Part shown: positions 30,360 through 51,694 of the stretch, piece after piece
How positions within the stretch are numbered: position 1 is the stretch's first letter
How the letters are laid out: each line of letters begins with the position of its first letter
IMG/VR virus record: IMGVR_UViG_3300032770_000001
Location: 310,001 to 374,000 of that record
Reading direction: 5' to 3' (one strand)
Length of the DNA: 64,000 nucleotides
Translations under genes and position numbers: made by a program
Notes under the pieces: generated by a model
What the model was told of the DNA's origin: nothing
Database searches by the model: none
The model's input: only the letters and a program-made list of their open reading frames with translations

Positions 30360-31571
30360 ATGTTCGGAGGCACTGGAGTGGGTAGACAACAACTCAACAC
30401 CAAACTTGACCCCAACAAACGGTCAAACGACGCAAAGGAATTCGAATCAGCTTTACGCCGCAGAATCGTTGGTCAAGATCAGGCGATTGAGAAGGTCGTC
30501 GAAATCTACCAAATGTTTCTGGCAGGTTTGAACCCTCCCGGTCGCCCGGTAGGAAACCTGCTCTTTCTTGGGCCGACAGGCTCCGGCAAGACTCGCGTAG
30601 TCGAGGCAATGGCTGAATCACTTTTCGGTGATGCGCGTGCTTGCATTAAGATCGACTGCGCAGAATTCCAACACTCACACGAAATCGCGAAGTTGATTGG
30701 TTCTCCTCCGGGATATCTCGGTCACCGTGAAACTCATCCTCTACTCACGCAGGAAGCCCTGAACCAATGGTTCACAGAGAAGCTGAAGCTTTCGATCCTG
30801 CTCTTCGACGAGATCGAGAAGGCGTCGGACTCGCTCTGGCAGTTGCTCCTCGGCATTCTCGACAAAGCAACCTTGACGCTCGGCGACAATCGTCGCGTAG
30901 ACCTGAGCCAGTGCATCATCGTCATGACCTCAAACCTTGGGGCTGGCGAGATGCAGGAAATGCTCTTGGGTGGTGTCGGGTTCCACATTAAAGACGGTGG
31001 AAACATCGTTGTGGATGAGCGTCTCGACGACAAGATTCAGCGCACGGCGGTTGAGGCGGCACGCCGCAAGTTCACGCCCGAATTCATGAACCGCATCGAC
31101 AAAACGGTCGTGTTCAAGACACTCCGCGAGGAGCACCTACGAGAGATTCTCCGTATCGAACTCGGCATGGTGCAACAGCGCATCCTGATGGCGGCTGGCA
31201 CGAACCAGTTCGTGTTTGAAGTCACGGATAAGGTTAAGGGCGATCTACTCAAGGAAGGCATGGACCCGAAGTACGGTGCCCGTCACCTGAAACGTGCCAT
31301 CGAACGTAAGATCGTTCATCCTCTTGCCAATTTGGTTGCGACTGGACAAACGAAGTTGGGCGACTTCATCAAGATCGACGTGGACAAAGATGGTGAATAC
31401 ACGTTCGTCAAAGAAGCCGAAAACGCGATGGTTCCAGTTCTGATGGAACGCTACGCCGCCACGGGCTCGACCGTGTCCGGCACGGTGGTACGTTCCGGCA
31501 TCCGCAAGGGCGACCCCGGCAGCAATCAAGGCGGTCCGCCCGTATCCGGCGTTCCCGGCTCCGGCTGGTAA
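30360..31571 (+). CDS. stand-alone ClpA/ClpB D2-type AAA+ ATPase
   Basis: 'IVGQ', Walker A GPTGSGKT, pore loop GSPPGYLG, Walker B LLFDEIEKA, 'MTSNLG', 'PEFMNRID', 'YGARHLKRAI'; no N-domain or D1. Confidence 0.9.
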   Translation: MFGGTGVGRQQLNTKLDPNKRSNDAKEFESALRRRIVGQDQAIEKVVEIYQMFLAGLNPPGRPVGNLLFLGPTGSGKTRVVEAMAESLFGDARACIKIDCAEFQHSHEIAKLIGSPPGYLGHRETHPLLTQEALNQWFTEKLKLSILLFDEIEKASDSLWQLLLGILDKATLTLGDNRRVDLSQCIIVMTSNLGAGEMQEMLLGGVGFHIKDGGNIVVDERLDDKIQRTAVEAARRKFTPEFMNRIDKTVVFKTLREEHLREILRIELGMVQQRILMAAGTNQFVFEVTDKVKGDLLKEGMDPKYGARHLKRAIERKIVHPLANLVATGQTKLGDFIKIDVDKDGEYTFVKEAENAMVPVLMERYAATGSTVSGTVVRSGIRKGDPGSNQGGPPVSGVPGSGW

Positions 31572-32437: not shown

Positions 32438-35400
32438 CTACGAAGATTTTTCGCTTGACAAAAATTCCGCTGAAGTCTTGGTATCTTCATCCCACTCAGG
32501 TTCCCACTTCTCGTACTTTATGAAAATGTGAACGCCTATCGTCTTCACACCCGCCTTCAAAGCAGCGAGCCAGCGGTGGTGCCCGTCCCGTATTTGGTAC
32601 TTGCCGTCCTTTTCAGGCCAAACTGCAATCGCCTTGAACTTGCTTCCGCCCTGTTTCATACGTCTCGCAAAGCGATTGACTTTCTCCGCGTAATGAGTCT
32701 GACCCTGACGTGACATCTGCTCCCCGCCTTCGATCTTCTCAATCGGAACCAACGTAACGTTCGGATCGTAATGGAAGTCCCGGTCATCATTGATGTCCGG
32801 ATCGGGCACCCATGTCACTTCGGGTGCTTTACCCGCAACCTTGGTACGCTTCAGAATCTTGATCTGCTGCGGAGAGAACACGCAGTAGCTCTTACCGCCG
32901 AACTCCGGACTGTTGCCTTCGTCGAGAATCGCGCCATCATACTTCAGGAACCGCAGGGCGTCCATCACGGGCTTGGAATCGATCAGCTTCCACTCCATGC
33001 CGGGATCGGTGACCTCTAGCATGTCGATGTTGATGCCCATCTCTTTCCAGTCCTGTTCGTTTAACTGACCCTCGGTGTACGCACGCAGGGCTTCAAGCAA
33101 TGTACGGGTAGCGTGCTCCGGAGGCGTGGTGCCCATCGGAAGCGGCTGAACATCGACATCCTCATCAATCCAGTTTGGGTTGGTGAAGTCCACCGGGTTG
33201 TTCATGGTGATCTGACAGGTCAGAACGTACTTGTCTCGTTTGTTGCCCGGATTTCCGGCACGGTTCTCAGCCCAATTGACGGCGGTCTGATAGTCCGGCG
33301 TGAAGAAGTAGGCATTGCTGCCGACCGTGACCTCAGCCAATCCCCAGAGTGTGCGCTTCCCAGTTGTAGGTGCGAACTCATTGAAGACGTGCGGAGTGCC
33401 GTGATACATAGTCATTGTCTTGGCAGTCTTTACGGAGCCCTCTTTATAATCTCTCTGCAACCGACGCTGTAGCTCCTGCTTGTGGTACTTGTTGGCGGTG
33501 TAGGGGCTGATCTCAGGCTCAACGATGCCCTTCACTTTGACCTGATTGGGTTTGAACACGATGTAGTCATCGTTGCCGAGAGTCTCATGATGGAGTTCAA
33601 TGACATTCTTGATAATCACCCCATCGTAGCCCCTTTCGTGGGCGAATGAGACGATGCTATCCGTATCGACCTCGTCTCCGTTGAACCAACCCTTCATTGC
33701 TTTTGGCGTCGGAATGGAATAATACCCGTTGTTTTTGGCGTCCACAACGAACGGCTTGTTGATCGTCAGATAGCATTCGTACACGAACGAACCGTATGCT
33801 TGCGCTACCAGTGGATCGGTGCAGAAAAATTTTCCCACCCGGTACTTGGGATCGTTGTGGATGTTATCTGACCACTTGTAGGTGCCGTGGTAAACAGGGC
33901 CGTACTGCTTCGCAACCTTGCCATGCGTGGGATCGAGTTTCAACTGCACACGATAAAGTCCACCATGAACTTTGTCGAGCAACACGGAGTGACCGCGTGA
34001 TTCCCACCACCGTTTGTACTTCAAAGCATCGCTCTTGTTCAGGAGTCCCTCGTCCGACCATCGCTGTTTCTTCGCAGCGGTATGTTCAGTCGGATGCCCC
34101 CAAACCTTCATCATCAGGTGTCCACCCGCAACCATGTCAATGTCTTCGAAATCGTTGTTTTCATACCACTGAATCAGGTTGAACCCCTTAGCTTGCTCCT
34201 CAGCAGTGTCGGCTACCAATAAGCAAAGTTTGGCTCCCCGCGACTCGGCCTCATCGAGAAATTTGTAAAGCAGATCATTTCCGTGTCCCTGACCCCGTGC
34301 GCTATCGTACACGTTGATATTGTTCAGGACAGCGAAATAATCGTATTGCCGTATGTCAGCGACTAACTCTTCGTTCGTGTAATTGAAACGGTCGAGCCAA
34401 TTTTGTAGTTGCTCAGCCGTCGTACTGGCAACGTATCCTTCAGCGGTGCCGAAATCCGTACTTACAACAATCTCCCGCACACCCGCCGCTGTCTTAGATG
34501 CCGTCTTGTTAAACTCATCCAGATCGAGAACCACAACCGCAGGAATGGACTTGGCTCCTAGAATCTTCAGAGCATCGTAGCGATGCGAACCTTCCACGAT
34601 GAACGGACCACCGGGGTCAACGCCAACGATCAGGGGCATCAATTCACCCGACTGTTTGATCTCTTCCGCCAGTTGTTTGGTACGCGGCGTCACATCGGGC
34701 GGCATATCGAACTCATCGAACGGCACTTCCCGGATGCCGTCGAGGATCAGGTAGTTCGGGAAAGTCGCGGCGATGGAACTCATGTTGTCCACCTGATCGA
34801 GAACCGTGCGACCATCTACAACCTGACCTGCCTCCGGGTATTTGACGTTGAACTGAGCTTCCAGATCGTCTTCACTGGAGCCCGTCGTCTCGGATGATCC
34901 CTTCCCGAACGGACGATTCTTCTGCTGCCACAATCCGAACCCAGCAGGGCTCCGGTCGCTGTGGGGGACGACATAATGTCCGACCACTTCCTCGGCGTAC
35001 ATATACATCGCCGTAGCCAAACCTTGACGCCGATACTCAGGTTCGACTTCGGTGTTCGCGGACTGGAGCTTATTGTTTCGCAGAACAAAATCAACGGAAC
35101 CTGCGTACTTTCCCTGCGCGGTCAGCCCTTTCTGAGTCGTATCAAAGGCGCGAACGGTGACTAAATTCCAATTGTTCTCATCGATTTCCAGATCAGGATC
35201 GGTTGGATCGCCATATTCATGGTAGCCGTACTCCAGTTCAAGTTTGAAGTTTTTGTACATGCCGCTACCGTAATCAACATCAACAGGTCCGGCTCCGGTC
35301 TTCTCACCGTCTTCCCAGCCACGCAGATCGATCAGGTACGCCTTAATCATCTGCCCCAGTTCTTTGGCGGCTGCGGTACGGTGATTGCCGTCGAACACAA

Positions 35401-38400
35401 ACAACCCCTCATCGGTATCGATGAATAGGGGGTGAGCCAGATGTTCCTCACTGGCATTCGCCTTCGGCTCGTTGATAAGCTCCGGGTTCTGAAGGAAGTA
35501 ATCGTAATCCGCAGTCACCAGTACGGATTGATCGGTCTTCACGATACTCGGATCGAACTCGTCCAATGGGGCATTGGCAATGTCCTGCTTGCGCTGCTCC
35601 CACGGCTTGCGAGCCCACTCGTCGATCACCAATGGACGTTCGCCGACATAGTCTAGCGTGGTCGGCATCTTGTCGTCGCCTTCCGGCGAAGATGCTCTTT
35701 TGGAATAGGTACGCTGACCACTTAGATTGTAGTTTTGTTTGTAGTCAGCATCGTTGATGTTACCGATTCGTATTTCGCGGACGATATCGTCTAAAGGCGC
35801 GGGTGTGCTTCCGTAGGGCTCGTAATCTTCAAATTGATCCGATGTGGCATCGATATAAGTGTTGTCGATAATTACCCAGCTATGTGGAATACCATTACTG
35901 TACCCATAAGCGATGGATGGACTGTATCCTGCATTTTCCAAGGCATCATAAACAGCGTCGGAAACTGGTTCACAATCTCCATTTTGAGCACGGCGACTAC
36001 CTATCACGCTTTCACGAGCATCCAAAACAATTTCTCGAATATCGGATAGGGACGCCTGTTTCTTTTGCCCGCCTGCGTGCTTTTCGATGATGTCCTTGGA
36101 GTTCTTAAACAGGGCGATGAGGCCGGGGTGGAAACTGCCGGAATCCTCTTCCATCATCTTGTTGATCTCATCCAGCGTGAACCACTCCAGTCCAGTGGTC
36201 TCCCAGTGGTGCTCACTCTGCGGGTGGAAGCTAAACTCGGTGCCCACCAGCCCAATGAAATTGTGGTAGCTGAAGCTGCCGGAACTGAACACGTAAGCCG
36301 GGATCATTGTGACGCCGCCGCCGTATCCCGTTTCCTCTTTCAGTTCGGCCTTGGCCGACTGCGCCAAACCCATACCCTCTTTGACTGCCCCGCCAATAGT
36401 GCCCCAACAGTCGCCGATGTGCACGTCCGGTGAACGCCACGCGAAACAGATACGCTTGGTGGTTGTGCAGATCGGCAGAACGCCTGATGCGGCGTTGCCC
36501 TCTCCAGCCCAAAAGCCCTCATCGTTAAAACCCTCGGCGAGCTTAATGCTAAAGTAGGGCAGCTTGTCTCGTTTATCCCGCTTCTTGGTCACGGGATAGC
36601 GTTGCGAGATGCGCTTCCACGCGGCCTTGGCTTCCGGCGTCTGATCGATACTCGAATTGAATTCTTTGTAGCCCCGCTTCTTGGCTTCAACGATAGCCAT
36701 ATCGTAGAGTTTCTGACCCAGACCTGTGCCACGGTAGGCATCCTCAACGTTGATATCGTAGACGTATGGACCTGCGATGACGGCTCCCTCGGTGCCGATG
36801 TCGATAAAACCGACCGGGCCTTCATACTGAGCGAAAGGACGAGGCATACGGTCTGGTGCCCATGCTCTAATCGTCCAACCACCGTACTCGTTATCGTTTT
36901 CTTCTGTTTCAAAGGTCAGTTTGGAGACATCGCCCTTCGGCACTTCCGATCCGGTCTTCGGGGTCGAGCCCAGCACGATGTAGTAGAGACCCCAGTCGTC
37001 GTCGAAATCGGTCTGGTAACGCTTCTTCAGTTTCTCCCAAACACTTGCCGCTTGCGGACTGTGGTCAATACCCTCATACAGGCGCTCATAACCAAGCTCG
37101 GCAGCTTTTGCAATCCCGGCCTGATAAATTCGCAGGCCGATACCTTGACCCTGAAGGTGTTGAGCGACAGAAGCGGCATCTACCATCAAGCTGTTCTTTG
37201 GAGCACGGGGATTGCCGGGTGCGTCTTCCATCAGTTGGAGGAACACAACACCAACACGTTGTCCCCCCAGTTTCGCGTAGGCTTCCACCCCTTTCGGAAT
37301 TTCCTCGGCGATAACCTCAACCCCATCGGCCAACGCAGCCGTCTTGACGCGACCGACAATACTACACGTGCGGAACGCCCGATCATTCACTTTATCCAAT
37401 TCGAATTTATCGACCTTGAATTGGTACCCACGCCCTAACACGATTTCCTTCTGATAGCCGCCGATGTCCAGATGCCCGGTGCCCTTTGGGACGTTGATGA
37501 TTAACACATCATACTTTTTAAGTCCGATATGCTTCGCAAGCTGATCGAGCCATGCTGGATCACCGTCTAGTGTGCAAGATACAAACCCACGATCAATGAA
37601 ACGGCTACCTTCGTTTGCCATCACAGCATTATCAGGAACAATGCGGTAGACTGTGGTAGCTTCAGGCAGAGGGTTGCTCTCAATGGCTTCATCCAAATCT
37701 AATACGGTCTGCCGATCATTCGTATCGAGATCGTCGTCCTTACGTTTACGTAGCGCCTCGTTGGTATCAACGAACATAACACCTGTGGAATAGTCTTTCT
37801 TCAGCCTATCCACATCATCCTTCACAGCGGAAGTCTTCGTCTGCTCAAGGTACGCCTTAGCTTCATCCGGACGATTCTGAAGACGCCACTTTGCACTGCG
37901 GAGATACGCCTTCTGTGTGCGTTCCGGCAGTTGCTCCCACGATGTTGCTTCGCCGCCACTCAACCAGTCTATGCTTGGAGAACCGAATAGAATCTTCGCC
38001 AGAGCCTCAACAACCTTGGGATCGTTCGGATCGTACTCTTTTGCCGGGGCTGCGGAAGCTTGAGTGGTTTCTTCCTGTCCGGCAACGGGTTTACCCTTGG
38101 CGTCAAGGAAGACAACGTCACGGTCGTAAACGTTGTAATCGGTGCCGCCTTTCTGCCACTTTACTTCAAGCAGACGAGTCGCACCACCGTAATATTGCTG
38201 ACCCACGTCCGGTGCCAAGTTGCGAATCTGCCGGATCACGCCTTTCATGCCATCGGCTTTACGCTGAACCTTAGAACCGATGTCACCCGGCTTCGTCATC
38301 GAAGGATCAACTTCATAGACGCGGGAAGGATCGAATACCACGATCTGATCGCCGTCGAGCAATTTGTGCAAGCCCTTACCCTTGAACCATACGGCATCAT

Positions 38401-41400
38401 ATTTCGACTTCAGGTTTTCGGTCAGCTTCTTGGTCGCCGCGACACGATCCTTCTTCGCCAGTTCAGGATCGTAACCTTGACTGATCCACCATTTCATCAT
38501 GGTCTTCGGGGCACCGAAATTGATGGTCTCCAGACGCGGCACATCGAGATAGTACATCTTCATTCCGCGAGTGGTGCCGCCTGCGAACGTCTTTGCGATA
38601 GACTTGACAGTCGTGAAATAGACGCCATAACCCAGATGGTGAACAGGTGCCGGAATGCCTTCGTGGTACGCCTGATTCTGATAACCGTGCTGGATGTCGC
38701 CGGAGCCTTCTTCGCCCTCGTAGACCACAAAACCCTGATCGCCAATAGCTTCGCGGCGGTCTTCGGTGGTGCCATGATACACCGGGCCGAATAGTTTGCG
38801 GTCGATAGCATCCTGCTGGCTGATGCGATTCATCTTCGCCATCTTGTCAAACACCACACTTGGAATCATCTTCTGAGCCGTAGCCTCTTTGTGTGACAGC
38901 TTAAAGCTCGCAGTCTGCGGTTGCTGTTCAGGCTGAACCTGTTCGACCTCGGTGGGCTCTACGGGCTCTTCCTTCTCCTCAGGCTTGACATACGTATTTG
39001 CGGGCTGTTGCTCACCCGGCTTGAGCCACATGATTTTGTACCCCATGCGCTCATCCCATTGCTTTTTGAAATCCTCAGGCACAGTGCCGTAGTGCACAAC
39101 GATGGGCATCATGCTGCCCTTTTCCTCACGGAAGGCTTCCGGGTCGTTGTAGTAGAACATGAGGTCGCGACCCTCGCGAATCTCCATCACGCATGTGATC
39201 TTGTTGCTGCCGCTATAACCAATGGGCTGCATCGAGCGAGCGTTCTGGAATGACCAGCCGCCTTTCTGCTGAATACGGAGCATGGAACGCAGGGTGCGAG
39301 TCAACTGCTCGGCGGCATTACGAAACACCGCTTCTCCCTGTTCGGTCGTCGGGATCACCGTATCTTTCGGTGGAACCTCAACATCATCGCCCATAACGCG
39401 GCGATAGGTGCGGGTGTAGTCGTAGTTACGGGCGTCGTACCCGTCCTTTTCGATTCGCTTTTGGTCAGACTTGAATGCGTGAGATGTGCGGCGAGTAATA
39501 GACGCCGTGAACACGCCCGGTAGAAGTTCACGAACACGTTTCTCAAGGTTTGCGTCCATCGTTAACTGCGACTCTTCGAGCCGACGCTTGATGGTCGCGA
39601 CGACGCGATCCACATACCGCTGTTGAGAATCAGCGTAAGCCTGCTTCATCGAGTCGGGCGCATTGGGCAGGGTCATCATGAAATGCTCGCCGATCAGGAA
39701 CTCAGAATCATTACCGTGCTCAAACGGAGCATCCAACCACGAAACGATGCTGTCCTCGTCGAGGAATAACGAGTTCGGCTGTCCTTCAACAACCACCATC
39801 ACCATACGATAATCGCCTGCGCTTCTGTTATGGCGAGGAGCGCCGAGAGCCGTCATCAGGTTGCGAGTCAAATAGATTCCGCCGTATGCCTGACGGCTGG
39901 GGCTCGTCATCCCGGCACTGGGATCATCCGCCCACTCTTTGCTCTTACCTTCGGGAACCAAACCTTCGCTCAAAATCGGGCGCAGGTTCTTGATGTCGGT
40001 GCCGTGGTAGTAAATCTGACGGTCAGCGGATTGTTTCTCACGTGGGGACGGAGAGATGTAATTGATGAATGTGTGCATCTCCATCAAAGCGTTCTCTTGG
40101 AACCGAAGCACTGACTGAATCGTGTGTTGTTCGCCGCCGAACTCGTTTTTATAGTCAGCGTACCACTCCTCAGCTTTCGTCAGATTTTCGGCTGCACTCG
40201 TCAACCGCTCCTGCAACATGTTCACATCTTTGCGCTTGGAGGTCTTGAGATACTGCTGGCAGTGGTTAAGCAATGTGAGTAGACGGGGCTGCTGCATCTC
40301 CACAACCGACTCGGCGACCGCAGGTTCGTTTGTGCGGAAGCGAGATGGGTGATGCAGGATAGTATCGTGCTCTGCAAGCAAGGAAGCATAACTCGTAACT
40401 GATCCACGTGGAGCAAATCCGTACCCCGGCTTCCAATCGACCTTGCGGTTTTTCGACGGACCTTTGCGATGAATGATCTTGATCTGCTGCTTGATAAGCG
40501 GTGCCAGACCTTCTGGCAGGCCGAACATGTTGCGCACCTGACCCTTATCATCGATCCAGAAAATCGCGTATTGACCTTCTTCGAACTGTCCGCCAGCCCA
40601 CTGGCTATCCAGAATTCGTTCGCTGAAGATATAGCTGTGATGCCAGTCCTTGCCGTCGCATTCGGCGAAGTCGTGGACTTCCTCGATCACGCCGTCCAGA
40701 ACTGAAGCGGCACCCATAACAAACGGCTTGCCTTTCCACGTGGCGTTATCCCCAGTGACGGCAGCCGCAGCCGCGTACTTCTTGAACGCCTTCGGCGTCC
40801 AGTAAATCTTGTAGTACCCGCCGTACTGATCTTTGGGGTCGTTGTTCGGCTCCTCAACCTTGGAGCAAACGCACTCAGCGACGGGCATCGCGTCGAAAGT
40901 AAAATAGACGGTTTCGCCAGCCAGCAAGATCGGGCGTCCCTTGTAAGCGTAGAACCGCTCCTGTGTCTCTGGGACCTCCCGGAAGAACCCCTCGCGGAAA
41001 TCGGACGGAACTTCGATGTACATCGCCTTCTTTAGCAGGCTGCCAGTCTTGGCATAGGGGTCTACAGTGCCCTGTAATTGCACAGCAAGGCCGCTGTACG
41101 TGCGCCATTCTCCCAAGGCGGACTCACGTGTGCCCAGAGCCCCCGGACGCGGCGTAAAGCTCAGAATCGCGATCTGATCGTCCGGCACTTGACCCAATGC
41201 CTCTACGTTCGAACTGAAAAAGAGAGGATTGAGCGGTCCACCCGCGTTCTCGCGAGCCGCGCACCATGTTTTGTAAAAGTCGAAGGATCGCTCCCGAAGT
41301 TCGGCTTCGGACATCGGCACCTTCCAGTACGACCAGCGGCGATTCCCCTCCGCATCCGTCCAACCATCACCCACGGGTTCGGCATTCGGCATCTCTTCCT

Positions 41401-43417
41401 GCGTCTTGCCCCGGTAGGATGAACTGCTCTCGATCTTTTTGCCCTCAATGAGTGCTTGTAGGTGGATGGGATAAGGTTTGCCGGGTCTCCAGTCCTTGTC
41501 CTGCGTCAAGTACGCCCCGCCCCACGTCACAGCTTCGTACAACCATGAACGCTGTGCTCCCACGCCCTTCTGTGCCATTTCAAGCATCTGAGGCACGGTA
41601 AGCTGCCCGGAGGCAACCTTCTTGCCCTCCACGACCGCAAGGTAAATTCCTTTGGCTATTTCGATGTCCTCAGTAAAGCTAATCGCCATACTGGTGCCGC
41701 CGCCCAACCCAGTACCTTCCGCCATCTGAAGTTGATAGCGAGTCTTCAGACCGCCCGACTGAACCGCAGATAGAGCGGTGGTCACATGGTAGAGAGTCTG
41801 TGGCAGGGGCTTGAATTGGCCCGGCATATAGAGCCCACGTTCCTTAGCGACCGTAGGATCAAGCCGTCCCTCGGAGATCGCCGCCAAAGCCGACTGCTCC
41901 CAATCCTGACGCCGCTTGTGACGTTCACGATTCTGTTCATCGGTCTCTTGCTCGAATATTTCTTGTCCCTTTTCGTCCTTGACGATCTTGGGATACGGGG
42001 CATACTCTTCCCGATTTTGTTCCCACGGCTCACCTGCCGCCGTAATCATCGTACCGGGTTGAACCTCATTTGGCTCTTCGTCATCCAGCTTGATAAGCTT
42101 CAACTGTGCTCCGTCACGCAGAGTGACTTCGTATTCATCGGGATTCTCAAAGTTCGCCACGAACGTCTGCCAAGGATCGACATCATTCTCGCTCTGAACT
42201 TCAGCGGTGATGGTCACCAGACGACCCTTCTTACCGCCCCCGCTCTGCCCCGACCAAAGCGAGGAGCCGCCCCAGTAAGCATCCGCCGCATCCGGGTTGG
42301 TCGTCCAGAATACTCCGGCACCATCCAGTTGGGGCTTTTGACCTTTTGGAACCTCAAGGGCTCGGTAGACGATCAGTGGAAATTCAAGGGTGTTAACCTG
42401 ACCGACCGCCTCGTCATACTTCCACTCCAGTTCCATGCGTTCGTCTTTGCTGCGAGGCAGCGGAAGCCCGTACTTCTGCTTGTAGAACTCTTTCAATGGT
42501 GGGGCATTGAATCTAATGCTGCCAGTCTTGGATGCGGTCGCAGGTTGGGCTTCGGCTTGAGGCTGTTGTTTGATAATCCCATTCTCGTCCCAAGGCAACT
42601 CCTGTTTCTGTTTCACCACAGGAGGCTTGTGCACTTTTGTATCGTAGTAGCTGCGAAGTGCCTGCTGGTATTGAGCCCAGTTGTTGACCACCCAACTTGT
42701 GACATCGCTCAGATCGTCGCTTTCGTAAATTGGGCGATCTTTGGCGTTCACAGGCAACTGCCACGTGCCGTAGTTGTTCATGATCGGCACGATGTCACGA
42801 GCCTCGGAGCCACGGAATATCACCTGAGGCTCATCGTCACCCGTGTGCCAGACCCGGATTCCGGACGCCCGGAAGAGAACTGCGTGCTTGCCGTACTTGG
42901 AACTGCCGCTGCGTGCGCCTGAGTAACGCATGAAATCGGAGAGTAAATAGGCGAAGTTGAAACCACCGGACTTTTTAGCGGCATCGCTGAACCATGTGGT
43001 TAAAGCGACACGATCCATATCGTCCATGCCGTACTTGAATCCGCTGGAAGCGATACCATCGGGATCATCGGTGAAGTGGATGAGCCACTGATTCTTGACC
43101 ATCCCCTCATAGCTCAACGTCAGATAGCTCGGTGCGTCGGCGGGGTTAGCGGATAGGATGGAGTTGGCTTCTTCCTCTTTGAAGCCCTGCATGAGTTTTT
43201 GGGAAAAGACGGACAAGTCCATGTCCATGACGGTATCGACGAGCGTCTCCGGATCATCTTCCTGCGGGAGCTTGTCCGCTTCATCGCTGTTTTGGACGTA
43301 GGCTACGAAATCCTGAGGGAACTTGAATACCATGTCCCGTGCGATGTCGGCATCGCTCATGGTCAGGTATTGTTTCAGCCAGTTAATCTCTTCGCCAAGA
43401 TAAGCCTGTTTTTCCAT
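32438..43417 (-). CDS. giant polyvalent protein (3659 aa): ~8 ART-like, 4 GNAT, 3 ParB-like, NUDIX, transglutaminase-like and unknown modules
   Basis: multiple YHGT/YHVT/VYR ART starts; GNAT RGxGxG loops; Nudix box GGAVKEGMGLAQSAKAELKEETG; DGxHR ParB motifs; C..H..D triad. Confidence 0.85.
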   Translation of the reverse strand: MEKQAYLGEEINWLKQYLTMSDADIARDMVFKFPQDFVAYVQNSDEADKLPQEDDPETLVDTVMDMDLSVFSQKLMQGFKEEEANSILSANPADAPSYLTLSYEGMVKNQWLIHFTDDPDGIASSGFKYGMDDMDRVALTTWFSDAAKKSGGFNFAYLLSDFMRYSGARSGSSKYGKHAVLFRASGIRVWHTGDDEPQVIFRGSEARDIVPIMNNYGTWQLPVNAKDRPIYESDDLSDVTSWVVNNWAQYQQALRSYYDTKVHKPPVVKQKQELPWDENGIIKQQPQAEAQPATASKTGSIRFNAPPLKEFYKQKYGLPLPRSKDERMELEWKYDEAVGQVNTLEFPLIVYRALEVPKGQKPQLDGAGVFWTTNPDAADAYWGGSSLWSGQSGGGKKGRLVTITAEVQSENDVDPWQTFVANFENPDEYEVTLRDGAQLKLIKLDDEEPNEVQPGTMITAAGEPWEQNREEYAPYPKIVKDEKGQEIFEQETDEQNRERHKRRQDWEQSALAAISEGRLDPTVAKERGLYMPGQFKPLPQTLYHVTTALSAVQSGGLKTRYQLQMAEGTGLGGGTSMAISFTEDIEIAKGIYLAVVEGKKVASGQLTVPQMLEMAQKGVGAQRSWLYEAVTWGGAYLTQDKDWRPGKPYPIHLQALIEGKKIESSSSYRGKTQEEMPNAEPVGDGWTDAEGNRRWSYWKVPMSEAELRERSFDFYKTWCAARENAGGPLNPLFFSSNVEALGQVPDDQIAILSFTPRPGALGTRESALGEWRTYSGLAVQLQGTVDPYAKTGSLLKKAMYIEVPSDFREGFFREVPETQERFYAYKGRPILLAGETVYFTFDAMPVAECVCSKVEEPNNDPKDQYGGYYKIYWTPKAFKKYAAAAAVTGDNATWKGKPFVMGAASVLDGVIEEVHDFAECDGKDWHHSYIFSERILDSQWAGGQFEEGQYAIFWIDDKGQVRNMFGLPEGLAPLIKQQIKIIHRKGPSKNRKVDWKPGYGFAPRGSVTSYASLLAEHDTILHHPSRFRTNEPAVAESVVEMQQPRLLTLLNHCQQYLKTSKRKDVNMLQERLTSAAENLTKAEEWYADYKNEFGGEQHTIQSVLRFQENALMEMHTFINYISPSPREKQSADRQIYYHGTDIKNLRPILSEGLVPEGKSKEWADDPSAGMTSPSRQAYGGIYLTRNLMTALGAPRHNRSAGDYRMVMVVVEGQPNSLFLDEDSIVSWLDAPFEHGNDSEFLIGEHFMMTLPNAPDSMKQAYADSQQRYVDRVVATIKRRLEESQLTMDANLEKRVRELLPGVFTASITRRTSHAFKSDQKRIEKDGYDARNYDYTRTYRRVMGDDVEVPPKDTVIPTTEQGEAVFRNAAEQLTRTLRSMLRIQQKGGWSFQNARSMQPIGYSGSNKITCVMEIREGRDLMFYYNDPEAFREEKGSMMPIVVHYGTVPEDFKKQWDERMGYKIMWLKPGEQQPANTYVKPEEKEEPVEPTEVEQVQPEQQPQTASFKLSHKEATAQKMIPSVVFDKMAKMNRISQQDAIDRKLFGPVYHGTTEDRREAIGDQGFVVYEGEEGSGDIQHGYQNQAYHEGIPAPVHHLGYGVYFTTVKSIAKTFAGGTTRGMKMYYLDVPRLETINFGAPKTMMKWWISQGYDPELAKKDRVAATKKLTENLKSKYDAVWFKGKGLHKLLDGDQIVVFDPSRVYEVDPSMTKPGDIGSKVQRKADGMKGVIRQIRNLAPDVGQQYYGGATRLLEVKWQKGGTDYNVYDRDVVFLDAKGKPVAGQEETTQASAAPAKEYDPNDPKVVEALAKILFGSPSIDWLSGGEATSWEQLPERTQKAYLRSAKWRLQNRPDEAKAYLEQTKTSAVKDDVDRLKKDYSTGVMFVDTNEALRKRKDDDLDTNDRQTVLDLDEAIESNPLPEATTVYRIVPDNAVMANEGSRFIDRGFVSCTLDGDPAWLDQLAKHIGLKKYDVLIINVPKGTGHLDIGGYQKEIVLGRGYQFKVDKFELDKVNDRAFRTCSIVGRVKTAALADGVEVIAEEIPKGVEAYAKLGGQRVGVVFLQLMEDAPGNPRAPKNSLMVDAASVAQHLQGQGIGLRIYQAGIAKAAELGYERLYEGIDHSPQAASVWEKLKKRYQTDFDDDWGLYYIVLGSTPKTGSEVPKGDVSKLTFETEENDNEYGGWTIRAWAPDRMPRPFAQYEGPVGFIDIGTEGAVIAGPYVYDINVEDAYRGTGLGQKLYDMAIVEAKKRGYKEFNSSIDQTPEAKAAWKRISQRYPVTKKRDKRDKLPYFSIKLAEGFNDEGFWAGEGNAASGVLPICTTTKRICFAWRSPDVHIGDCWGTIGGAVKEGMGLAQSAKAELKEETGYGGGVTMIPAYVFSSGSFSYHNFIGLVGTEFSFHPQSEHHWETTGLEWFTLDEINKMMEEDSGSFHPGLIALFKNSKDIIEKHAGGQKKQASLSDIREIVLDARESVIGSRRAQNGDCEPVSDAVYDALENAGYSPSIAYGYSNGIPHSWVIIDNTYIDATSDQFEDYEPYGSTPAPLDDIVREIRIGNINDADYKQNYNLSGQRTYSKRASSPEGDDKMPTTLDYVGERPLVIDEWARKPWEQRKQDIANAPLDEFDPSIVKTDQSVLVTADYDYFLQNPELINEPKANASEEHLAHPLFIDTDEGLFVFDGNHRTAAAKELGQMIKAYLIDLRGWEDGEKTGAGPVDVDYGSGMYKNFKLELEYGYHEYGDPTDPDLEIDENNWNLVTVRAFDTTQKGLTAQGKYAGSVDFVLRNNKLQSANTEVEPEYRRQGLATAMYMYAEEVVGHYVVPHSDRSPAGFGLWQQKNRPFGKGSSETTGSSEDDLEAQFNVKYPEAGQVVDGRTVLDQVDNMSSIAATFPNYLILDGIREVPFDEFDMPPDVTPRTKQLAEEIKQSGELMPLIVGVDPGGPFIVEGSHRYDALKILGAKSIPAVVVLDLDEFNKTASKTAAGVREIVVSTDFGTAEGYVASTTAEQLQNWLDRFNYTNEELVADIRQYDYFAVLNNINVYDSARGQGHGNDLLYKFLDEAESRGAKLCLLVADTAEEQAKGFNLIQWYENNDFEDIDMVAGGHLMMKVWGHPTEHTAAKKQRWSDEGLLNKSDALKYKRWWESRGHSVLLDKVHGGLYRVQLKLDPTHGKVAKQYGPVYHGTYKWSDNIHNDPKYRVGKFFCTDPLVAQAYGSFVYECYLTINKPFVVDAKNNGYYSIPTPKAMKGWFNGDEVDTDSIVSFAHERGYDGVIIKNVIELHHETLGNDDYIVFKPNQVKVKGIVEPEISPYTANKYHKQELQRRLQRDYKEGSVKTAKTMTMYHGTPHVFNEFAPTTGKRTLWGLAEVTVGSNAYFFTPDYQTAVNWAENRAGNPGNKRDKYVLTCQITMNNPVDFTNPNWIDEDVDVQPLPMGTTPPEHATRTLLEALRAYTEGQLNEQDWKEMGINIDMLEVTDPGMEWKLIDSKPVMDALRFLKYDGAILDEGNSPEFGGKSYCVFSPQQIKILKRTKVAGKAPEVTWVPDPDINDDRDFHYDPNVTLVPIEKIEGGEQMSRQGQTHYAEKVNRFARRMKQGGSKFKAIAVWPEKDGKYQIRDGHHRWLAALKAGVKTIGVHIFIKYEKWEPEWDEDTKTSAEFLSSEKSS

Positions 43418-46400: not shown

Positions 46401-47225
46401 GATTGAAACCCAGCTAGAACCGTTCCAAACTTCAATATCATCCGGCATCAACGTGCCGTTATAGTAGAACGCTTCGGAGCCGGAATCATCAGTGCCGATG
46501 TCGTCCAACTTGAGCTTCCAGTCAGCCTGCTCACGCATACGCAGTACGCACGGAATCAAACCCTCTTCACCGGGTTCGTCAGAATTGTGGTAAGCGAACT
46601 CTTCGGCACGCATGACCCAAAACGAGACGCCTTTGGCGTCGGTCAGGAAGACTTTGCCAGCTTTGTGACCAGCGAGTGCCGGACCTCCGATACCGGATTC
46701 CGCACCGGGCGTTAATCCACCGGAGGCGATGCTATCCAGATTCTTCAAGTAGGTGACGTGGTAGATGTACTTGCCGGGGGAGGCGTATTCATAGCCCTGA
46801 TCGTCATAATCAAACGCGAATTTCTCGGTAAGTTGCCGACCAGCCGTGGGGATGTACTCGTATTTCCACATGCCTTCAATCTGCACTTCATTCAGTTTAT
46901 CGTTTGGAACGAAGAAACCGTCTTCCTTGTGCTCAGTGGTCTGTACGGCATCTTCCGGCACCCGCACTTTGATGATTGCCATCTCCGGCTTGCGGTTCTT
47001 GATTTCAGACCACGGCTTGCCGGAATCGGTCAGCTTCTTCCAGAATTTGCCTTCGGCGACCGAAGCATAAGCCTCGGAATACTTCAGATCGTCATAGAAG
47101 TAGATTCCATCACGTCCTTGCGGTGCGTAGTAGTTTCTCCAAAAACCCTGATCGATGGGCTTGAATCCTTCCGCTTTAATCTTCTCCGCAATTTCGACGG
47201 ACGTGACGTGGTAGAGGGTCAACAT
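43437..47225 (-). CDS. polyvalent protein (1262 aa): ~5 ART-like modules, an unknown module and a C-terminal GIY-YIG-like nuclease
   Basis: LYHVT, IYHVT, LYHYT, VYRC, FYHAT ART starts; 'VYLLHF..HYLGW..RIQEH..ERRLK..CPIC'. Confidence 0.8.
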   Translation of the reverse strand: MLTLYHVTSVEIAEKIKAEGFKPIDQGFWRNYYAPQGRDGIYFYDDLKYSEAYASVAEGKFWKKLTDSGKPWSEIKNRKPEMAIIKVRVPEDAVQTTEHKEDGFFVPNDKLNEVQIEGMWKYEYIPTAGRQLTEKFAFDYDDQGYEYASPGKYIYHVTYLKNLDSIASGGLTPGAESGIGGPALAGHKAGKVFLTDAKGVSFWVMRAEEFAYHNSDEPGEEGLIPCVLRMREQADWKLKLDDIGTDDSGSEAFYYNGTLMPDDIEVWNGSSWVSIYSANIDPMSQVDEEGYIQEGLQKPKLAYADQYDMVPQHGFEGIGGQAFPKLRRTQLWWEEPMDEGTLKHASVNSESELAPEPGTAPIPPGTVRLYHYTKSYANLASIRSQGLLASKARGDDGSGRPQPSAGVWASSYPPEHNNIFVEFWAKPDQISQRANYPDKGWRQDPNSNRMIHDVEPTQEELDEWAKGYRHVIMNGDVPPSQFIAIHEPWHYFARYIVENWDEMYPQQKTQEEVQKLESFGAKDEAKALSWAIKHFSGKTGSRKVAFDSELYSDLEFQILNEYNDHLGDKEYRMKWELVPAGRLIKIWNDWAKTGHVRDEKGLDDIAWLITKNIYKLQINTFFTGHETGNPRAYAQDMLDAQLPEDYWEQVPSFFDDEKGNWRISDYAMKPLWGLADQLEKAQSPEQKLQIIDKILNVVHQRSDLASWFVEGGSRTLSRLSGQGKTSAARFAPFNTWLRRQGGMKGLLGAYDVQLEEQYGYDLDIKNQRQREQEMIRRARDEYEDKYNELVASYNRWVFPMDVYRCISVPEVGSKTRGREYPAPAQQHLFPGTPMEEYQQGLQSIQYKGVGVYWSWDENAAECHWGTGGPSVTLHAVITENDVDWEGTLSANMMPSTGDEEKEVRLKEGTQFELEGIQYEGDNWIEPPVKMVTAKVANEPRVFYHATAAKNINSIAKNGLKPSQNPQWGGSLGQFSYDKTFFAPTPGGAMYYAEIVFRDTLEAYGKASIPICLRVTIPPEMAMETGEPEIYNVHELKEKEEFREAWVKEVIPPSRIEMYWHDQWQPIKAGSWSDMEVVLSEEEGYVDWEGGPIGYSLDEVEKDVESYTMPKTAKMNEPGQVYLLHFLIGQGQTVPSSRPDATTGKFHAGHYLGWAKDAQTRIQEHYNNTSGVKLIEALHGKGLTFTVAKIWGAPPEKPVTRAFERRLKNQGGLSRSCPICKQLGIDRDTVYKKKKLQDVQVAPAQPTEGPDFVEQEKVEKKPS

Positions 47226-50200
47226 TACTCAAACTCCTCCGGGATCAACGTTTCAAGTGCAGGCAATCCCTCGACACCATGCGTGCGCTCCGGGATGTTG
47301 GCGTAGCCATTGTTCTCCAGACCTTCACCGTAATCCCCGCTGTCGTAACGAGTGTCACTCAGAGGCGGCGTTTTATGGGACGAAGATTTGTCAAACGTCA
47401 TCAGGAACGGCCCTTGCTTCAACTTTTCCAAATCAGAGCCAACCAGCGTGCCGAGGTATTCCAAGTCTTCCGGCTTGCACAAGAAGTTGGTGTACTGCTG
47501 CCACGAGTGTTGAACCGCTTCTTCCTTCGTGTAAGAAAGATTAGTCACCTTGGATGGTTCCGACATCAACCGTTCCCAGCCTTTGATAACGTTCTCCACC
47601 TGTTCCTGATGGTGGGAACCTTGGAAGTTTTTAATGCGAGCCACGACCACGGCAGGCTCGCCAGAGATGCGGCTGTTCTTTACGTCACGAGTTGACCACT
47701 TGCCAGTGACGTATGCCTCGATCTGAGCCGCGACCTCACCACCTTGTCCGGCAAAACGGGTCGCAACCTCACCCGCAGGGGTGGTGCTGACCAAGTGGTG
47801 TTCCATCGAATAGCTACGCTCCAGCGACTCCAACGCCTTTTGACGCTTGCGTGGAATCTGATCGATAGTCTTGCCATACTTCGACAGAACCTCGTTGAGA
47901 ATCTCTATGAACTCCAGACCACGGAAGCCATCCTTGGCAATGATCCGGGCGATATCCACCGTGGTGCCGTGATAGACGATCCCCGCACGCCAGTCCTGCT
48001 TAAGCTGCTCCCATGCGTCTGCTGCGGCAGTTTTCTTCGAATTGACTCTACGCAAACTGAGTTGTTCCGGGGTCAGGTCTGGGATGGTCTGCGCCCACGT
48101 AGAGCCGTGGAATGTACCTAGTGGAACCCATGCCTCATAAAGCACGAGCCCACGAGCTTTCAATCCCCGGTCGCGTCCGGCTTGCTGCATTGCCGTGGCA
48201 CCATCCTGCGCCAAGAATGAGCCTTTGCGTAATCCTTCGCGGTCGATGATAGCGGCGGTCGCGGACGGTGTCGCGTGATACAGGCGGACGCGGTTGTTCT
48301 CGATGGGAAGTTTGTTGCGTTCTGCCCAATCACGATTCTTCTCTTCCTGCGTCCACTCCGCGTAGGGTTTGCTGTTTGCTTTCTTGTTCCAAGGATAGTT
48401 CGCCATGTAGTATGCGTATTCTTTCGTGGCAGCTTCTTCCTTTTGTTCACGGGTGAATGGCGCTTTTACTGGGTAGTTCGGGTCTTTCCACACCGCTTCC
48501 GGGATAACAATGGAGTGGTCTTCAGTAATCGGCAGCATTCCGATTCTTGAAAGGTCTGGGTCGTATCCTACAAACTTTTTTGGGTAATGCGTGACGTGAG
48601 CGTGCCCCTTCGAACCGTCCTGCATCTTCCCTTCTGTATCCCACAGCCGCACTTCGACGCTGAAGTTGTTCACGTCGGAGTCAGGCGTCACCTGAATCGT
48701 GACGGTGTCTTTGTAGAACAGCATCTTGCCGTTCTTGAACTCTTTCACCTTGTCCCACATTGCGCCTGCGATCTTGCTGCCGACTTTCTGGATGAAACTA
48801 CCATCCGGAACCACAGCGGAGATCGAGCCCTCATCTTCGCTCACATTCTTGTAGTAGACACCGCGACGAGCCTGACCACGGGTGATTTGACCTCGCATGA
48901 TGCTGTTGGCTTTGAAGTCCTGTCTCGGATCGTTGGGGGTGTTCACCATATCGCCCACAATCTTCACCGGAAAGATGTCCGGCTTCATTGTCGGAGCGAC
49001 CTGAGTACCATCGGAAAACTTTGCTTTATTCGCCCAATCGCCGGGATAGAAATCCTCATCCGGTAGGGGTGTACCCTGTCCCCCTGCGCTATAGCCAGTC
49101 GGGAAAATTCCGTGCTTAGCCAGAGACTTCTTGCCCATGAGTAAAGTCTTGCCGTACTCTCGCGTGCCGTCCCATTCACCCTGTGCCGGGTATCCGATAC
49201 GGGCCGTCAATGCATCCTTTGCGGCTTGGAATGTACCGATGTGCAGCCCATACGCCGCACCACGCAACTCGCCGGATGGCGAACCGTGGTAGTAGGTGGT
49301 GTTATCGACGAACTTCGCCCCAGTCTTTCCTTTCGGTGCGCCCTTGCTGGCTTCGGCAATCCACGCTTCCTGTCCGGCATCGATCATCGCTTTTAGCATA
49401 TTCAAAGTGCTGCGAGCACCATCGAAGTCCCAATTTCCCAACGAAACGGCGGCGTCACGAGCGAGAGTCTGTGGGCGGTTATAAACGCGAAGCGCAGCAT
49501 GAGCTTCAGCATACCGTTTGCTCACTGCCTTAAAATCAGCGATGGCCTCATCCAATGTCTTACCCTTGAGTTTGCCATCTTTCTGCACTCCATAGTTGCC
49601 ACGCATGTTACCTTGCATCTCACGTTCGAAGCCATACGCATTTTCGAGTACACGCAGAACTTTCTCGGTCTTCTCTTTCACGCTGCCGTAACCAAATGAG
49701 CCGTTGATGATGGCGACCCGCTCATTCATGCGGTGGGTGAGATCGCCACAGTGCTCCACCACGAAGCTGTATACTCCGGCTCCGAGTGGGTGGTGTTGGA
49801 TGCGGAGCATGGCGTGCTCCGGGGCCCCACGTTGTTCGTCTGCCAACTCGATAAATGCGGCATACTCTTTCACACGAGCCTCACGCATTTCAGTGTAAGT
49901 CTGGAAGTGTTGCTTCTCTTCAGGATCAGTGATTTCAGCACCGACCTTAGAGATGTCAGCGTTCGGAGCTTCAGCCCAGAGTTTAGCCAGTTTCTCTTCC
50001 ACGTCCTTACTGCGTGCCAAGTTCCAGCCGTTGAATTGTCCGATTTTCGCTTTGCCACGACCGAAGTCGGGATCGTCAGTCTGCACCAGACGATATTCAC
50101 CGCCCTCCCAATTGAGTTTGCTCAGATAATCCATCGCTTGACGACTGAGGTTAAACGCATACTGCCAGCCAAGGCGGACACCGCGAGGGCCGTACTTGAA

Positions 50201-51694
50201 TTCGTTGATGAGAACGTAAACGTTACGTCTCGGCTGAACGATCTCGTTCTTGTCGATCAGCATCTTCTCGGTCACGAAGTTGGCACCATACTTTGCGTTG
50301 AAACGACGGGCAATTGCACGCCATCCCGAACCGTGACCATAGCCACGATATTGGAGCATCTTGTAGGCATCGAGACCCATACGCAGCACCTTCGGACGCT
50401 CATTCAGAAGCAGGTCTTCGTGATGTGCAAGTTCGTGTGCAACCACACGAGGCAGGAGTTTGTCATTACCGACCATGTCGCTCTGAATTGAAATTGTAGT
50501 GTTCTCATCAGCGTAGACCTGACCGTTCGCATCCTGCCCATACCGCCAGTGACAGTCACCACCAGTGGGCTCAGCGGCACGATTGACAATCTTGATCGTT
50601 GGACGCGGTAGACCCGGCGATAGCACCGCCATCATCTCGGTGACAACGTTCTGCACTTTGCCATAGGGGTCTTCTTCGGCTGCCAATTTCGGTGACTTGG
50701 AAGCGTGCATTCCCATTGCACGTTCAAGCTGCACGACTTCCTGCGTCTCACTCTTACGAGACAAGGCGACTTCACGCACCATGAAACTGATGCCCTTCAA
50801 GCCGTCGAGACCTTCATATTTTTGCGAGACATCCGGCTTGACATACGCCAACGTGATGTGTGGTTGATAATCCGGGAAGTTATCCGGGCGATTGCCGATT
50901 TCGGCATCGATCTTTTCTTTGAGTGTTTTGAGTCCGGAACCTACAACCTCGATCACAATCGGGGCGGTACCTTCCGACGCTTCGGACGGAGTGAACACGT
51001 GGAGCTTGCCGAACGTGACTGGAAACGGAGTCACGCCCTGAACCGCACGACGGAGTCCTTCGGCGTCCTCATCCACACCGTACTTAAGTGTGATGTGCGC
51101 CTGCATCTCACGTCCCTTGCCTGCTAAGTCTTCATCTGGAATCAGAGCCTTGCTGAACTGCTCCAGCTTCCCGGCGATATTGTCCGGAACATTGACCTGT
51201 GTCGATGCGTTGGAATACGCAGCGAACTTCGGTGTGCGGAACGTCTTCGCCTGCGACATGGGCACCATCACCGATACGCGGGGGTAGCCCATGTCGCGAA
51301 GCACAGCAAAGCGGTGCCGACCATTGGTAAAGCTTACGCCGCCACGGTCATCGTAATCGTTATAGGAAATCAGCGGGGCTTCAATCGGAGTGCCGGGGTT
51401 GTCCTTGAGCCATTTCTGGAACCGCTCGTAACGTCCGTGGATGGCATTCTCGGTGCCGCCCGGTCCGACGTAGAATCCGGGCGGATCGCTTGCCTTCCAC
51501 TCCGCATCAAGTTTTGCGGTATCAACGTTGACTAGGACGTAGTCTTTACTGCCCCGCATGTGGGACGGGCGGGTGAACTTAATTGGCGGCAGGTCAGCGG
51601 GATTTCCGCTTGGCTTTGAGGGCTGCGATGGCGTAGCGTGATTTTCTTCCGGCGTATCTGACGCGGCGGTGATTTTTTGCAGAAGTGGATTCAT
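47225..51694 (-). CDS. polyvalent protein (~1489 aa): ParB-like, 2H phosphoesterase, SprT-like metalloprotease, 3 ART-like and unknown modules
   Basis: 'FTNGRHR'; HITL x2; 'HELAHH..GHG..W'; YYHGS, LYHAT, VYHGT; start chosen at MNPLLQKITA. Confidence 0.8.
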   Translation of the reverse strand: MNPLLQKITAASDTPEENHATPSQPSKPSGNPADLPPIKFTRPSHMRGSKDYVLVNVDTAKLDAEWKASDPPGFYVGPGGTENAIHGRYERFQKWLKDNPGTPIEAPLISYNDYDDRGGVSFTNGRHRFAVLRDMGYPRVSVMVPMSQAKTFRTPKFAAYSNASTQVNVPDNIAGKLEQFSKALIPDEDLAGKGREMQAHITLKYGVDEDAEGLRRAVQGVTPFPVTFGKLHVFTPSEASEGTAPIVIEVVGSGLKTLKEKIDAEIGNRPDNFPDYQPHITLAYVKPDVSQKYEGLDGLKGISFMVREVALSRKSETQEVVQLERAMGMHASKSPKLAAEEDPYGKVQNVVTEMMAVLSPGLPRPTIKIVNRAAEPTGGDCHWRYGQDANGQVYADENTTISIQSDMVGNDKLLPRVVAHELAHHEDLLLNERPKVLRMGLDAYKMLQYRGYGHGSGWRAIARRFNAKYGANFVTEKMLIDKNEIVQPRRNVYVLINEFKYGPRGVRLGWQYAFNLSRQAMDYLSKLNWEGGEYRLVQTDDPDFGRGKAKIGQFNGWNLARSKDVEEKLAKLWAEAPNADISKVGAEITDPEEKQHFQTYTEMREARVKEYAAFIELADEQRGAPEHAMLRIQHHPLGAGVYSFVVEHCGDLTHRMNERVAIINGSFGYGSVKEKTEKVLRVLENAYGFEREMQGNMRGNYGVQKDGKLKGKTLDEAIADFKAVSKRYAEAHAALRVYNRPQTLARDAAVSLGNWDFDGARSTLNMLKAMIDAGQEAWIAEASKGAPKGKTGAKFVDNTTYYHGSPSGELRGAAYGLHIGTFQAAKDALTARIGYPAQGEWDGTREYGKTLLMGKKSLAKHGIFPTGYSAGGQGTPLPDEDFYPGDWANKAKFSDGTQVAPTMKPDIFPVKIVGDMVNTPNDPRQDFKANSIMRGQITRGQARRGVYYKNVSEDEGSISAVVPDGSFIQKVGSKIAGAMWDKVKEFKNGKMLFYKDTVTIQVTPDSDVNNFSVEVRLWDTEGKMQDGSKGHAHVTHYPKKFVGYDPDLSRIGMLPITEDHSIVIPEAVWKDPNYPVKAPFTREQKEEAATKEYAYYMANYPWNKKANSKPYAEWTQEEKNRDWAERNKLPIENNRVRLYHATPSATAAIIDREGLRKGSFLAQDGATAMQQAGRDRGLKARGLVLYEAWVPLGTFHGSTWAQTIPDLTPEQLSLRRVNSKKTAAADAWEQLKQDWRAGIVYHGTTVDIARIIAKDGFRGLEFIEILNEVLSKYGKTIDQIPRKRQKALESLERSYSMEHHLVSTTPAGEVATRFAGQGGEVAAQIEAYVTGKWSTRDVKNSRISGEPAVVVARIKNFQGSHHQEQVENVIKGWERLMSEPSKVTNLSYTKEEAVQHSWQQYTNFLCKPEDLEYLGTLVGSDLEKLKQGPFLMTFDKSSSHKTPPLSDTRYDSGDYGEGLENNGYANIPERTHGVEGLPALETLIPEEFE

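Follow-up and report, generated by a model that had tools for sequence, protein, structure and literature searches.

The content of P0001, a phage polyvalent protein of 3659 amino acids (aa), probably evolves by the exchange of in-frame cassettes, each made of a module and a linker, with a transglutaminase (TGase)-like cassette as a lineage-specific, foreign element. The protein is a string of about 22 independently folding effector modules and is encoded in a 64,000-nucleotide stretch of DNA (the window) that covers bases 310001-374000 of the 455,708-bp virus record IMGVR_UViG_3300032770_000001. A preliminary description of the window had delimited the TGase-like module and an ADP-ribosyltransferase (ART) module by K-x-A motifs (KQA, KRA, KTS and KTA), and had proposed that both were recently acquired as in-frame cassettes. 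The module coordinates and the positions of the motifs were correct. Residue numbers below are those of P0001 unless stated otherwise, and the coordinates of all features are collected in Table 1.

Three states of one slot in closely related phages

Using a profile built on the NUDIX module, we retrieved 4 IMG/VR loci and 38 metagenome loci, one of which is the phage's own contig. In the closest set (L004 and L012-L020), the NUDIX modules are 73-79% identical to that of P0001, and the polyproteins are collinear with P0001 over residues 454-2709, with block differences. The slot between the NUDIX and the ParB-like modules occurs in three states. It is empty in six relatives (L004, L013, L014/L015, L016 and L019/L020), where a single KTA[AS] linker is found and the junction, ...HPGLISLFKSDGKKIEQLLGKPKTAAGDDGDMPN..., runs directly into the homologue of the ParB-like module (residues 2573-2705). 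Residues 2573-2703 of P0001 are aligned by BLAST to residues 3496-3626 of L004 and likewise to the sequences of L013, L014, L016 and L019, and at the junction ...YSKRASSPEGDDKMP... of this phage aligns with ...KPKTAAGDDGDMP... of L004. The slot of L012 contains a cassette of about 95 aa, unrelated to the TGase-like one, that extends from KTAS to KIAA and for which no homologue was found in this genome or in the other relatives. In P0001, the slot contains the TGase-like cassette, which extends from KQAS to KRAS. The slot junctions of L012 and of this phage thus indicate that a cassette corresponds to one module plus one extra linker. The comparison with related phages that the preliminary description had called for therefore revealed what is expected of in-frame cassettes, namely modules that are present or absent in close relatives, with breakpoints at the module borders and clustered at the linkers.

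In a tree inferred from the NUDIX and ParB-like modules, L012 is nested among the empty-slot sequences and its cassette therefore represents a gain. The GC content at third codon positions (GC3) of this cassette is 0.505 as compared to 0.657 for the surrounding frame (z -3.1), and the conserved flanks of the slot have GC3 values at or above the means of their own frames in all relatives. The collinear modules differ in their identity to L012 and L004, being 35% for residues 1128-1472, about 38% for the ParB-like module and 43-45% for residues 454-888, as compared to 72-79% for residues 1525-1773, the second GNAT module (GNAT2) and the NUDIX module. These differences suggest either that some modules were replaced by homologous variants or that the rates are very unequal.

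A cysteine-rich mini-module of about 20 aa (FFCVACDGGDCIEHESL, zinc-knuckle-like) was also observed between KTAS and LTAAV/KQA linkers. L012 (residues ~1850-1870 of that protein), L014 (residues ~287-305), L016, L018 and L044 contain this unit, but not L004, L019 or this phage, from which we conclude that very small units are also exchanged at linkers.

Codon composition of the lineage-specific modules

To quantify the deviations in composition, we used GC3, on which the amino acids have almost no influence, and compared the values for 23 modules in P0001 with those expected from the residues of each module and from codon usage in the remaining 446 genes. The TGase-like module had the lowest value of the 23 (0.392 as compared to 0.601 expected, z -4.75), confirming that it is richer in AT than its flanks, as had been judged by eye. 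Of windows of the same length in the other genes, just 0.1-0.4% had GC3 values this low. Total GC was 0.45-0.47 at positions 35700-36149 and 0.46-0.48 at positions 37350-37799, where the ART module is located, as compared to 0.53-0.58 in the flanks.

The sliding GC3 profile along positions 32438-43417, proposed earlier as a check, was not flat and contained a strong trough in the TGase-like module. Using an interval scan statistic, the log-likelihood ratio (LLR) of this trough was estimated to 17.8, whereas the maximum in 100 permutations was 12.0. It was also the largest LLR among 22 genes of at least 900 aa, all others being at most 10.7. Recursive binary segmentation yielded no split, since a short internal segment barely alters the two-part likelihood. 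The left edge of the trough is sharp: GC3 drops from 0.82 (residues 2381-2440) to 0.30 (residues 2461-2520) within about 40 codons, and the trough begins 6 codons past K2453 of the KQAS linker. TGase-like modules elsewhere have GC3 values similar to those of their surroundings, both in phage Tunturi 5 (0.731 and 0.719, respectively) and in G003 (0.956 and 0.973), and the AT-rich signature is thus not intrinsic to the domain family. That the TGase-like cassette is a compositionally foreign, lineage-specific unit is well supported.

The second segment identified by the scan was a wider zone of low GC3 around the ART (residues 1739-2126, GC3 0.518, LLR 12.6). This overlaps by about 90% with a block of three modules, Block A, that consists of a 73-aa module, the ART and the first GNAT module (GNAT1) and has a GC3 of 0.543 (z -2.67). 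Block A is missing in L012 and L014 between the homologues of residues 1525-1773 and GNAT2, and is absent from all relatives compared. Hence, the ART is lineage-specific as the cassette hypothesis had it, but it appears within a block of three modules and not as a cassette on its own. Within the ART module, the dip is limited to residues 1861-1960 (GC3 0.45), and the low total GC is partly due to amino-acid composition (GC2 0.34). The AT-richness of the ART is only suggestive. When pooled, the lineage-specific blocks had a GC3 of 0.542 (z -4.3), while that of the collinear backbone was 0.658 (z +3.5).

Linkers and homology breakpoints

The motif KT[AGS][AGS] occurs 9 times in P0001, corresponding to 2.5 per 1000 aa as compared to 0.18 expected, and is concentrated in the large polyprotein-like genes of this genome. 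The general form of the linker in P0001 is K-[TQRV]-[AG]-[ASE], and the same linkers are present in two adjacent polyproteins. Well-supported homology breakpoints are located at linkers, at residues 787, 2159, 2292, 2450, 2573 and 2704. Compared to random positions, clusters of ends of high-scoring segment pairs were more frequently located at most 10 aa from a motif, with p-values from 0.008 to <0.0002 depending on the definition of the motif. The NUDIX module occurs within polyproteins, at the C-terminus of polyproteins and as a stand-alone gene of 167-182 aa, and after this module the same K-x-A linker leads into at least 8 different modules.

At the DNA level, only AAGAC (about 5 nucleotides) is common to the linkers. 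The codons differ synonymously, with ACT, ACG, ACC and ACA being used for threonine and GGC, GGA, GCT, GCG and GCA for glycine or alanine, and the motif is therefore kept at the protein level. Given the short common sequence and the synonymous variation, we rejected a function of the linkers as sites of recombination in the DNA. The frame of L009 (G003:C1:46162-49407), a related polyprotein, has a GC3 of 0.97, and the linker-joined architecture is thus found in phages that differ widely in base composition.

Gain of cassettes and alternative explanations

The process that we propose for P0001 is the in-frame gain, loss and replacement of units of one module and one linker, with breakpoints in the linkers. 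It would probably be mediated by illegitimate or short-homology recombination between the polyprotein genes of related jumbo phages, and junctions in the linkers would survive because the frame and the folds stay intact. The TGase-like cassette would originate from a source of lower GC3 and would not yet have drifted to the codon usage of the genome. The ART would be part of another lineage-specific block, in which the trace in composition is much weaker.

Several observations weigh against this reading. The right edge of the TGase trough is soft, with a near-normal GC3 of 0.54 for residues 2532-2572. The ART module has a GC3 of 0.512 as compared to 0.607 expected, and the z value of -2.5 fails correction for 23 modules; values this low were found in 3.4% of the genome windows, and the edges of the dip in the ART zone do not coincide with the KTS and KTA motifs. 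Thus, by deviation in composition the TGase-like module qualifies as an in-frame cassette and the ART is marginal. The earlier claim that the ART is AT-rich holds for total GC, but GC3 is merely mildly low, and the claim that the shifts in composition coincide with the motifs holds only for the left edge of the TGase-like module. Moreover, another lineage-specific block (residues 2710-3108) is not clearly poor in GC3 (z -1.2), and low GC3 is therefore no general mark of variable modules. No close donor was identified, the best homologue of the TGase-like module being 49% identical. For the ART, the identical contig was the only match in IMG/VR and no match was obtained in tblastn searches against 50,697 phage records. 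The foreign GC3 of the TGase-like cassette agrees with the notion that it was "recently acquired", but it provides no date and the nearest homologue is too divergent to supply one. The spread in identity of the collinear modules, 35-79%, could be caused by differences in rates rather than by exchange. Finally, the tree of the NUDIX and ParB-like modules placed this phage as sister to the whole empty-slot clade, and parsimony therefore cannot separate a gain of the TGase-like cassette from a loss.

The last observation raises the alternative of an ancestral cassette that was lost from the sister clade (L004, L012-L020) when the stretch from one linker to another was deleted in frame, in which case its low GC3 would not signify a foreign origin. 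One loss fits the clade of six as well as one gain, and TGase-like modules are found in the polyproteins of distant relatives (Tunturi 5, G003 and L043). However, a long residence of the cassette is difficult to reconcile with its GC3 of 0.29-0.39 adjoining a NUDIX module at 0.73-0.82, and the TGase-like modules elsewhere match the GC3 of their own genomes. In addition, the same slot shows a clear gain in L012, and the nearest homologue of the TGase-like module is located in a different polyprotein context. We consider an ancestral cassette unlikely and infer, with composition as the sole argument for the direction, that the TGase-like cassette was gained.

It is less likely still that the AT-rich third positions reflect selection on translation or mRNA, such as for slow codons that aid co-translational folding or for an internal signal, or chance, rather than history. 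The trough in the TGase-like module is stronger than in any permutation or any other large gene, it coincides with a documented indel, and homologous modules in two other genomes lack it. This is so despite swings of GC3 in both directions along the open reading frame (ORF), with high values for the NUDIX module (z +3.0) and for residues 3330-3525 (z +2.7), and despite the dips covering just the N-terminal 60-65% of the TGase-like and ART modules. No antisense ORF was present under the cassettes in the ORF list, no excess of promoter- or terminator-like sites was observed and no Rfam families were matched. An embedded RNA or DNA signal as the cause of the dips was rejected on the latter two grounds. 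For the dip in the ART, with values that recur elsewhere in the genome at the frequency given above, the explanation by selection or chance stands.

A chimera of strains joined at short conserved linkers during metagenome assembly is very improbable even though the contig is metagenomic and a related strain departs from it at 36076, since P0001 is matched without a difference over 3390 aa by a second, independent contig in IMG/VR, a Logan contig of 53.6 kb, which may stem from the source sample, spans the stretch, a 151-nucleotide contig from another sample bridges positions 35945-36095 across the NUDIX-TGase junction without a mismatch, and the sequence that the linkers have in common is too short to mislead an assembler.

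The exchange of in-frame cassettes thus remains our preferred explanation for the variable content of P0001. The phage comes from a wetland metagenome, and at least 3 further wetland samples contain it at low depth. The departing strain, on a low-depth contig in run X4, is 94% identical and diverges five codons before KQAS, possibly into a different linker or cassette state. In run X2, there is an in-frame deletion of 3 nucleotides at 37813, just past the KTSA linker.

Identity of the TGase-like and ART modules

The TGase-like module yielded 25 matches (E <= 0.001) among 1.84 billion representative proteins. The closest homologue, P0005, lies within another jumbo-phage polyprotein, 2070 aa in length, that is encoded on a contig of 338 kb. 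This contig is unrelated, although an InPase-RelA/SpoT gene is located beside the polyprotein, as in this phage. The other homologues include further polyproteins and a dozen stand-alone proteins of 105-150 aa, and the borders of the module are given independently by the homology to P0005 and to these stand-alone genes. In a scan of IMG/VR, the sole match was the identical contig. No variation was observed at Cys30, His60 and Asp71 among 20 homologues, in agreement with a Cys-His-Asp triad. An AlphaFold2 model of the module, with a predicted local distance difference test score of 86.7, was most similar in Foldseek to NlpC/P60 (MepS), LapG and MOA papain-like proteins (probability 0.9-1.0), with template modelling scores of just 0.40-0.52. 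None of the 20 members reached the curated threshold of a Pfam model of the Transglut_core type. Below threshold, YunG was matched by 12 of the 20 (best E 0.003) and Transglut_core3 by 3 (best E 4e-4), and the module of P0001 itself scored 17.5 bits against YunG (cutoff 27). Judged from sequence and predicted fold, the label "transglutaminase-like" is probably correct at the superfamily level. The module is a putative peptidase, deamidase or transglutaminase that may have a role in the processing of its own polyprotein.

Two other proteins matched in this search are repetitive. P0004 (3202 aa) contains 14 tandem repeats of 171 aa with identical scores, each with a Cys-His-Asp TGase-like domain, and P0006 (2278 aa) has a similar period of about 173 aa. 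These could be real giant repeat proteins or assembly artefacts.

The ART is a predicted ADP-ribosyltransferase of the C3/VIP2 type, with a score of 34.1 bits to Pfam ADPrib_exo_Tox over residues 1883-2012 (cutoff 23.4). The sequences VYRIV, FVSCTL and GGYQKEIVL, which contain YR, S-C-T and Q-K-E, align with the catalytic motifs (Arg, Ser-Thr-Ser and [QE]-x-E) of Certhrax and Vip2, R-S-E type enzymes, although weakly (E 0.01-0.02). The nearest clusters in the ESM Atlas are stand-alone viral ADPrib_exo_Tox proteins of about 170 aa. No homologue of the ART was found in the records of four relatives. A word index yielded no match to the piece alone or within a query of 1201 aa. Given the limits on length and words, the negative results from this index and from tblastn are weak evidence.

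Domain architecture and genomic context

Searches against Pfam identified several unrelated catalytic or effector domains in P0001: ART-PolyVal (E 3.5e-26, 93.1 bits, cutoff 31.2), several GNAT acetyltransferases above their cutoffs (Acetyltransf_1/7/10/CG), two ParB_N-like regions (ParB_N 34.4 bits, cutoff 26.3) and NUDIX at residues 2310-2429, above its cutoff. P0001 is a phage polyvalent protein by this combination in a single polypeptide, by the signature domains ART-PolyVal and ParB_N, and by its location in a virus record with a jumbo-phage relative. Among cultured phages, the nearest relative is Tunturi 5, a jumbo myovirus of Tunturiibacter (Acidobacteriota) with a genome of 309 kb and a second polyprotein at 165 kb. 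Its gene product gp273 has the NUDIX module in common with P0001 (57% identity), and the gene sits after one annotated as "minor head protein". No structural genes were identified in this phage among ten neighbouring ORFs in scans against PHROGs and Pfam. A megablast search with the P0001 ORF against the 50,697 phage records produced zero matches. P0001 is preceded by two further polyproteins on the same strand. The one at 47225-51781 also matched an SprT-like zincin below threshold (18.5 bits, cutoff 25.6).

Table 1. Features of P0001 and its surroundings in the window (LLR, log-likelihood ratio)
Feature	Residues in P0001	Position	Strand	Comment
P0001, polyvalent protein ORF, 3659 aa		32438..43417	minus	~22 modules, K-x-[AG]-[AS]-type linkers between
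ParB-like (DGNHR) module	2573-2705	35303..35701	minus	BLAST to relatives; GC3 0.677
KRAS linker	2573-2576	35690..35701	minus	Closes TGase cassette; counterpart of single KTA[AS] in relatives
TGase/papain-like Cys-His-Asp cassette with upstream KQAS	2453-2572	35702..36061	minus	Lineage-specific, GC3-poor
Core of GC3 trough	2459-2531	35825..36043	minus	GC3 0.288, scan LLR 17.8
KQAS linker	2453-2456	36061-36050	minus	Opens TGase cassette
NUDIX module	2289-2452	36062..36553	minus	Pfam NUDIX; conserved backbone; GC3 0.73
Block A: 73-aa module, ART, GNAT1	1774-2160	36938..38098	minus	BLAST maps, junctions
KTAA linker	2025-2028	37334..37345	minus	Downstream of ART
Predicted C3/VIP2-type ADP-ribosyltransferase with upstream KTSA	1861-2024	37346..37837	minus	Pfam ADPrib_exo_Tox
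KTSA linker	1861-1864	37837-37826	minus	Upstream of ART
Second polyprotein P0003, 1262 aa		43437..47225	minus	KTGS/KTSA/KTAK linkers; Tpt1/PARP-like ART signatures
Third polyprotein, 1518 aa		47225..51781	minus	2H phosphoesterase/Acb1-like domain; KTGA/KTAA/KLAA linkers
InPase+RelA/SpoT gene		52160-53731	minus	Further upstream of polyproteins

Relation to known systems

Polyvalent proteins have been described as combining many unrelated effector domains in one polypeptide of variable architecture, and as being predicted to be packaged in the virion, injected and proteolytically processed (Iyer, Burroughs, Anand, de Souza and Aravind 2017, PMC5512222). P0001 resembles these proteins in its mix of domains (ART-PolyVal, GNAT, ParB-like and NUDIX, with a 2H phosphoesterase and a putative zincin nearby), while exceeding in size and number of modules the 2-15 domains reported (PMC5512222). 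A word search of the text found no description of a conserved inter-module linker, a three-state slot or compositional evidence for the gain of a cassette (PMC5512222). The class is already known; what is new is the detail of a conserved linker, a slot with three states and a trace in composition. Polyvalent proteins are regarded as the first phage weapons to enter a cell, and how their repertoire changes is poorly documented. At this locus, a single slot differs between close relatives in having one of three states, every junction is marked by a linker that is conserved in the protein, and there is a compositional trace of recent arrival. This provides a testable assembly rule for effector arrays, by which unknown modules in giant phage proteins may be delimited by cutting at the linkers.

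In polymorphic toxin systems such as CdiA, Rhs and MuF-toxins, C-terminal toxin domains are swapped after the motifs VENN and PxxxxDPxGL, and newly acquired modules often differ in composition. P0001 is similar in that a short conserved peptide motif marks the swap point of unrelated effector domains. However, in polymorphic toxins it is the C-terminal tip that varies and an immunity gene travels along, whereas the cassettes in P0001 are internal and in tandem, with many slots and without immunity genes. Integron gene cassettes likewise form an expandable array to which independent units are added at defined junctions, but these are separate ORFs with attC sites in the DNA and an integrase, in contrast to the in-frame units of P0001 with a junction conserved at the protein level only.

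Repeated short motifs between functional units are also found in viral polyproteins and in the head proteins of jumbo phages, as exemplified by the cleavage sites L/I-x-E of T4 gp21, S/A/G-x-E of phiKZ gp175 and V/L-x-A|S of the herpesvirus assemblin. Assemblin-fold capsid proteases cut Ala|Ser bonds, which the K-x-A|S form of the linkers recalls. It is plausible, and the most economical reading, that the linkers in P0001 are processing sites at which a protease would release the modules; the polyprotein may also be packaged in the virion. Going further, we tentatively suggest, with the odds somewhat against it, that K-[TQRV]-[AG]|[AS] linkers are cut by an assemblin-like, capsid-associated protease and that the array behaves as an "in-frame integron" of effectors that are co-expressed, packaged, freed and injected. 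Any stand-alone effector gene landing between two linkers would then automatically be co-expressed, packaged, cut free and injected, which would explain both the stand-alone gene versions of the modules and the turnover of the slot among near relatives. As a point against, no protease or capsid gene was recognised that would tie such cleavage to the linkers: the Pfam models Peptidase_S78 and Phage_capsid had no match in the phage's own genome. The models Peptidase_S77 and Gp23 did not match the phage genome either, but this is uninformative as they had no match in the control genomes.

Other genes in the record

Upstream of the polyprotein cluster, the window contains a gene at 13667-14713 on the plus strand for an RNA ligase (phrog_24030, E 9e-111) whose N-terminal region is HNH-like, and a gene for a ClpB/AAA_2-type ATPase at 30360-31571, also on the plus strand. 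Outside the window, large genes at 386235-396421 and 412346-417391 of the genome (1051, 1478, 648 and 1682 aa) contain 2-3 KT[AGS][AGS] motifs each and may encode further linker-joined polyproteins.

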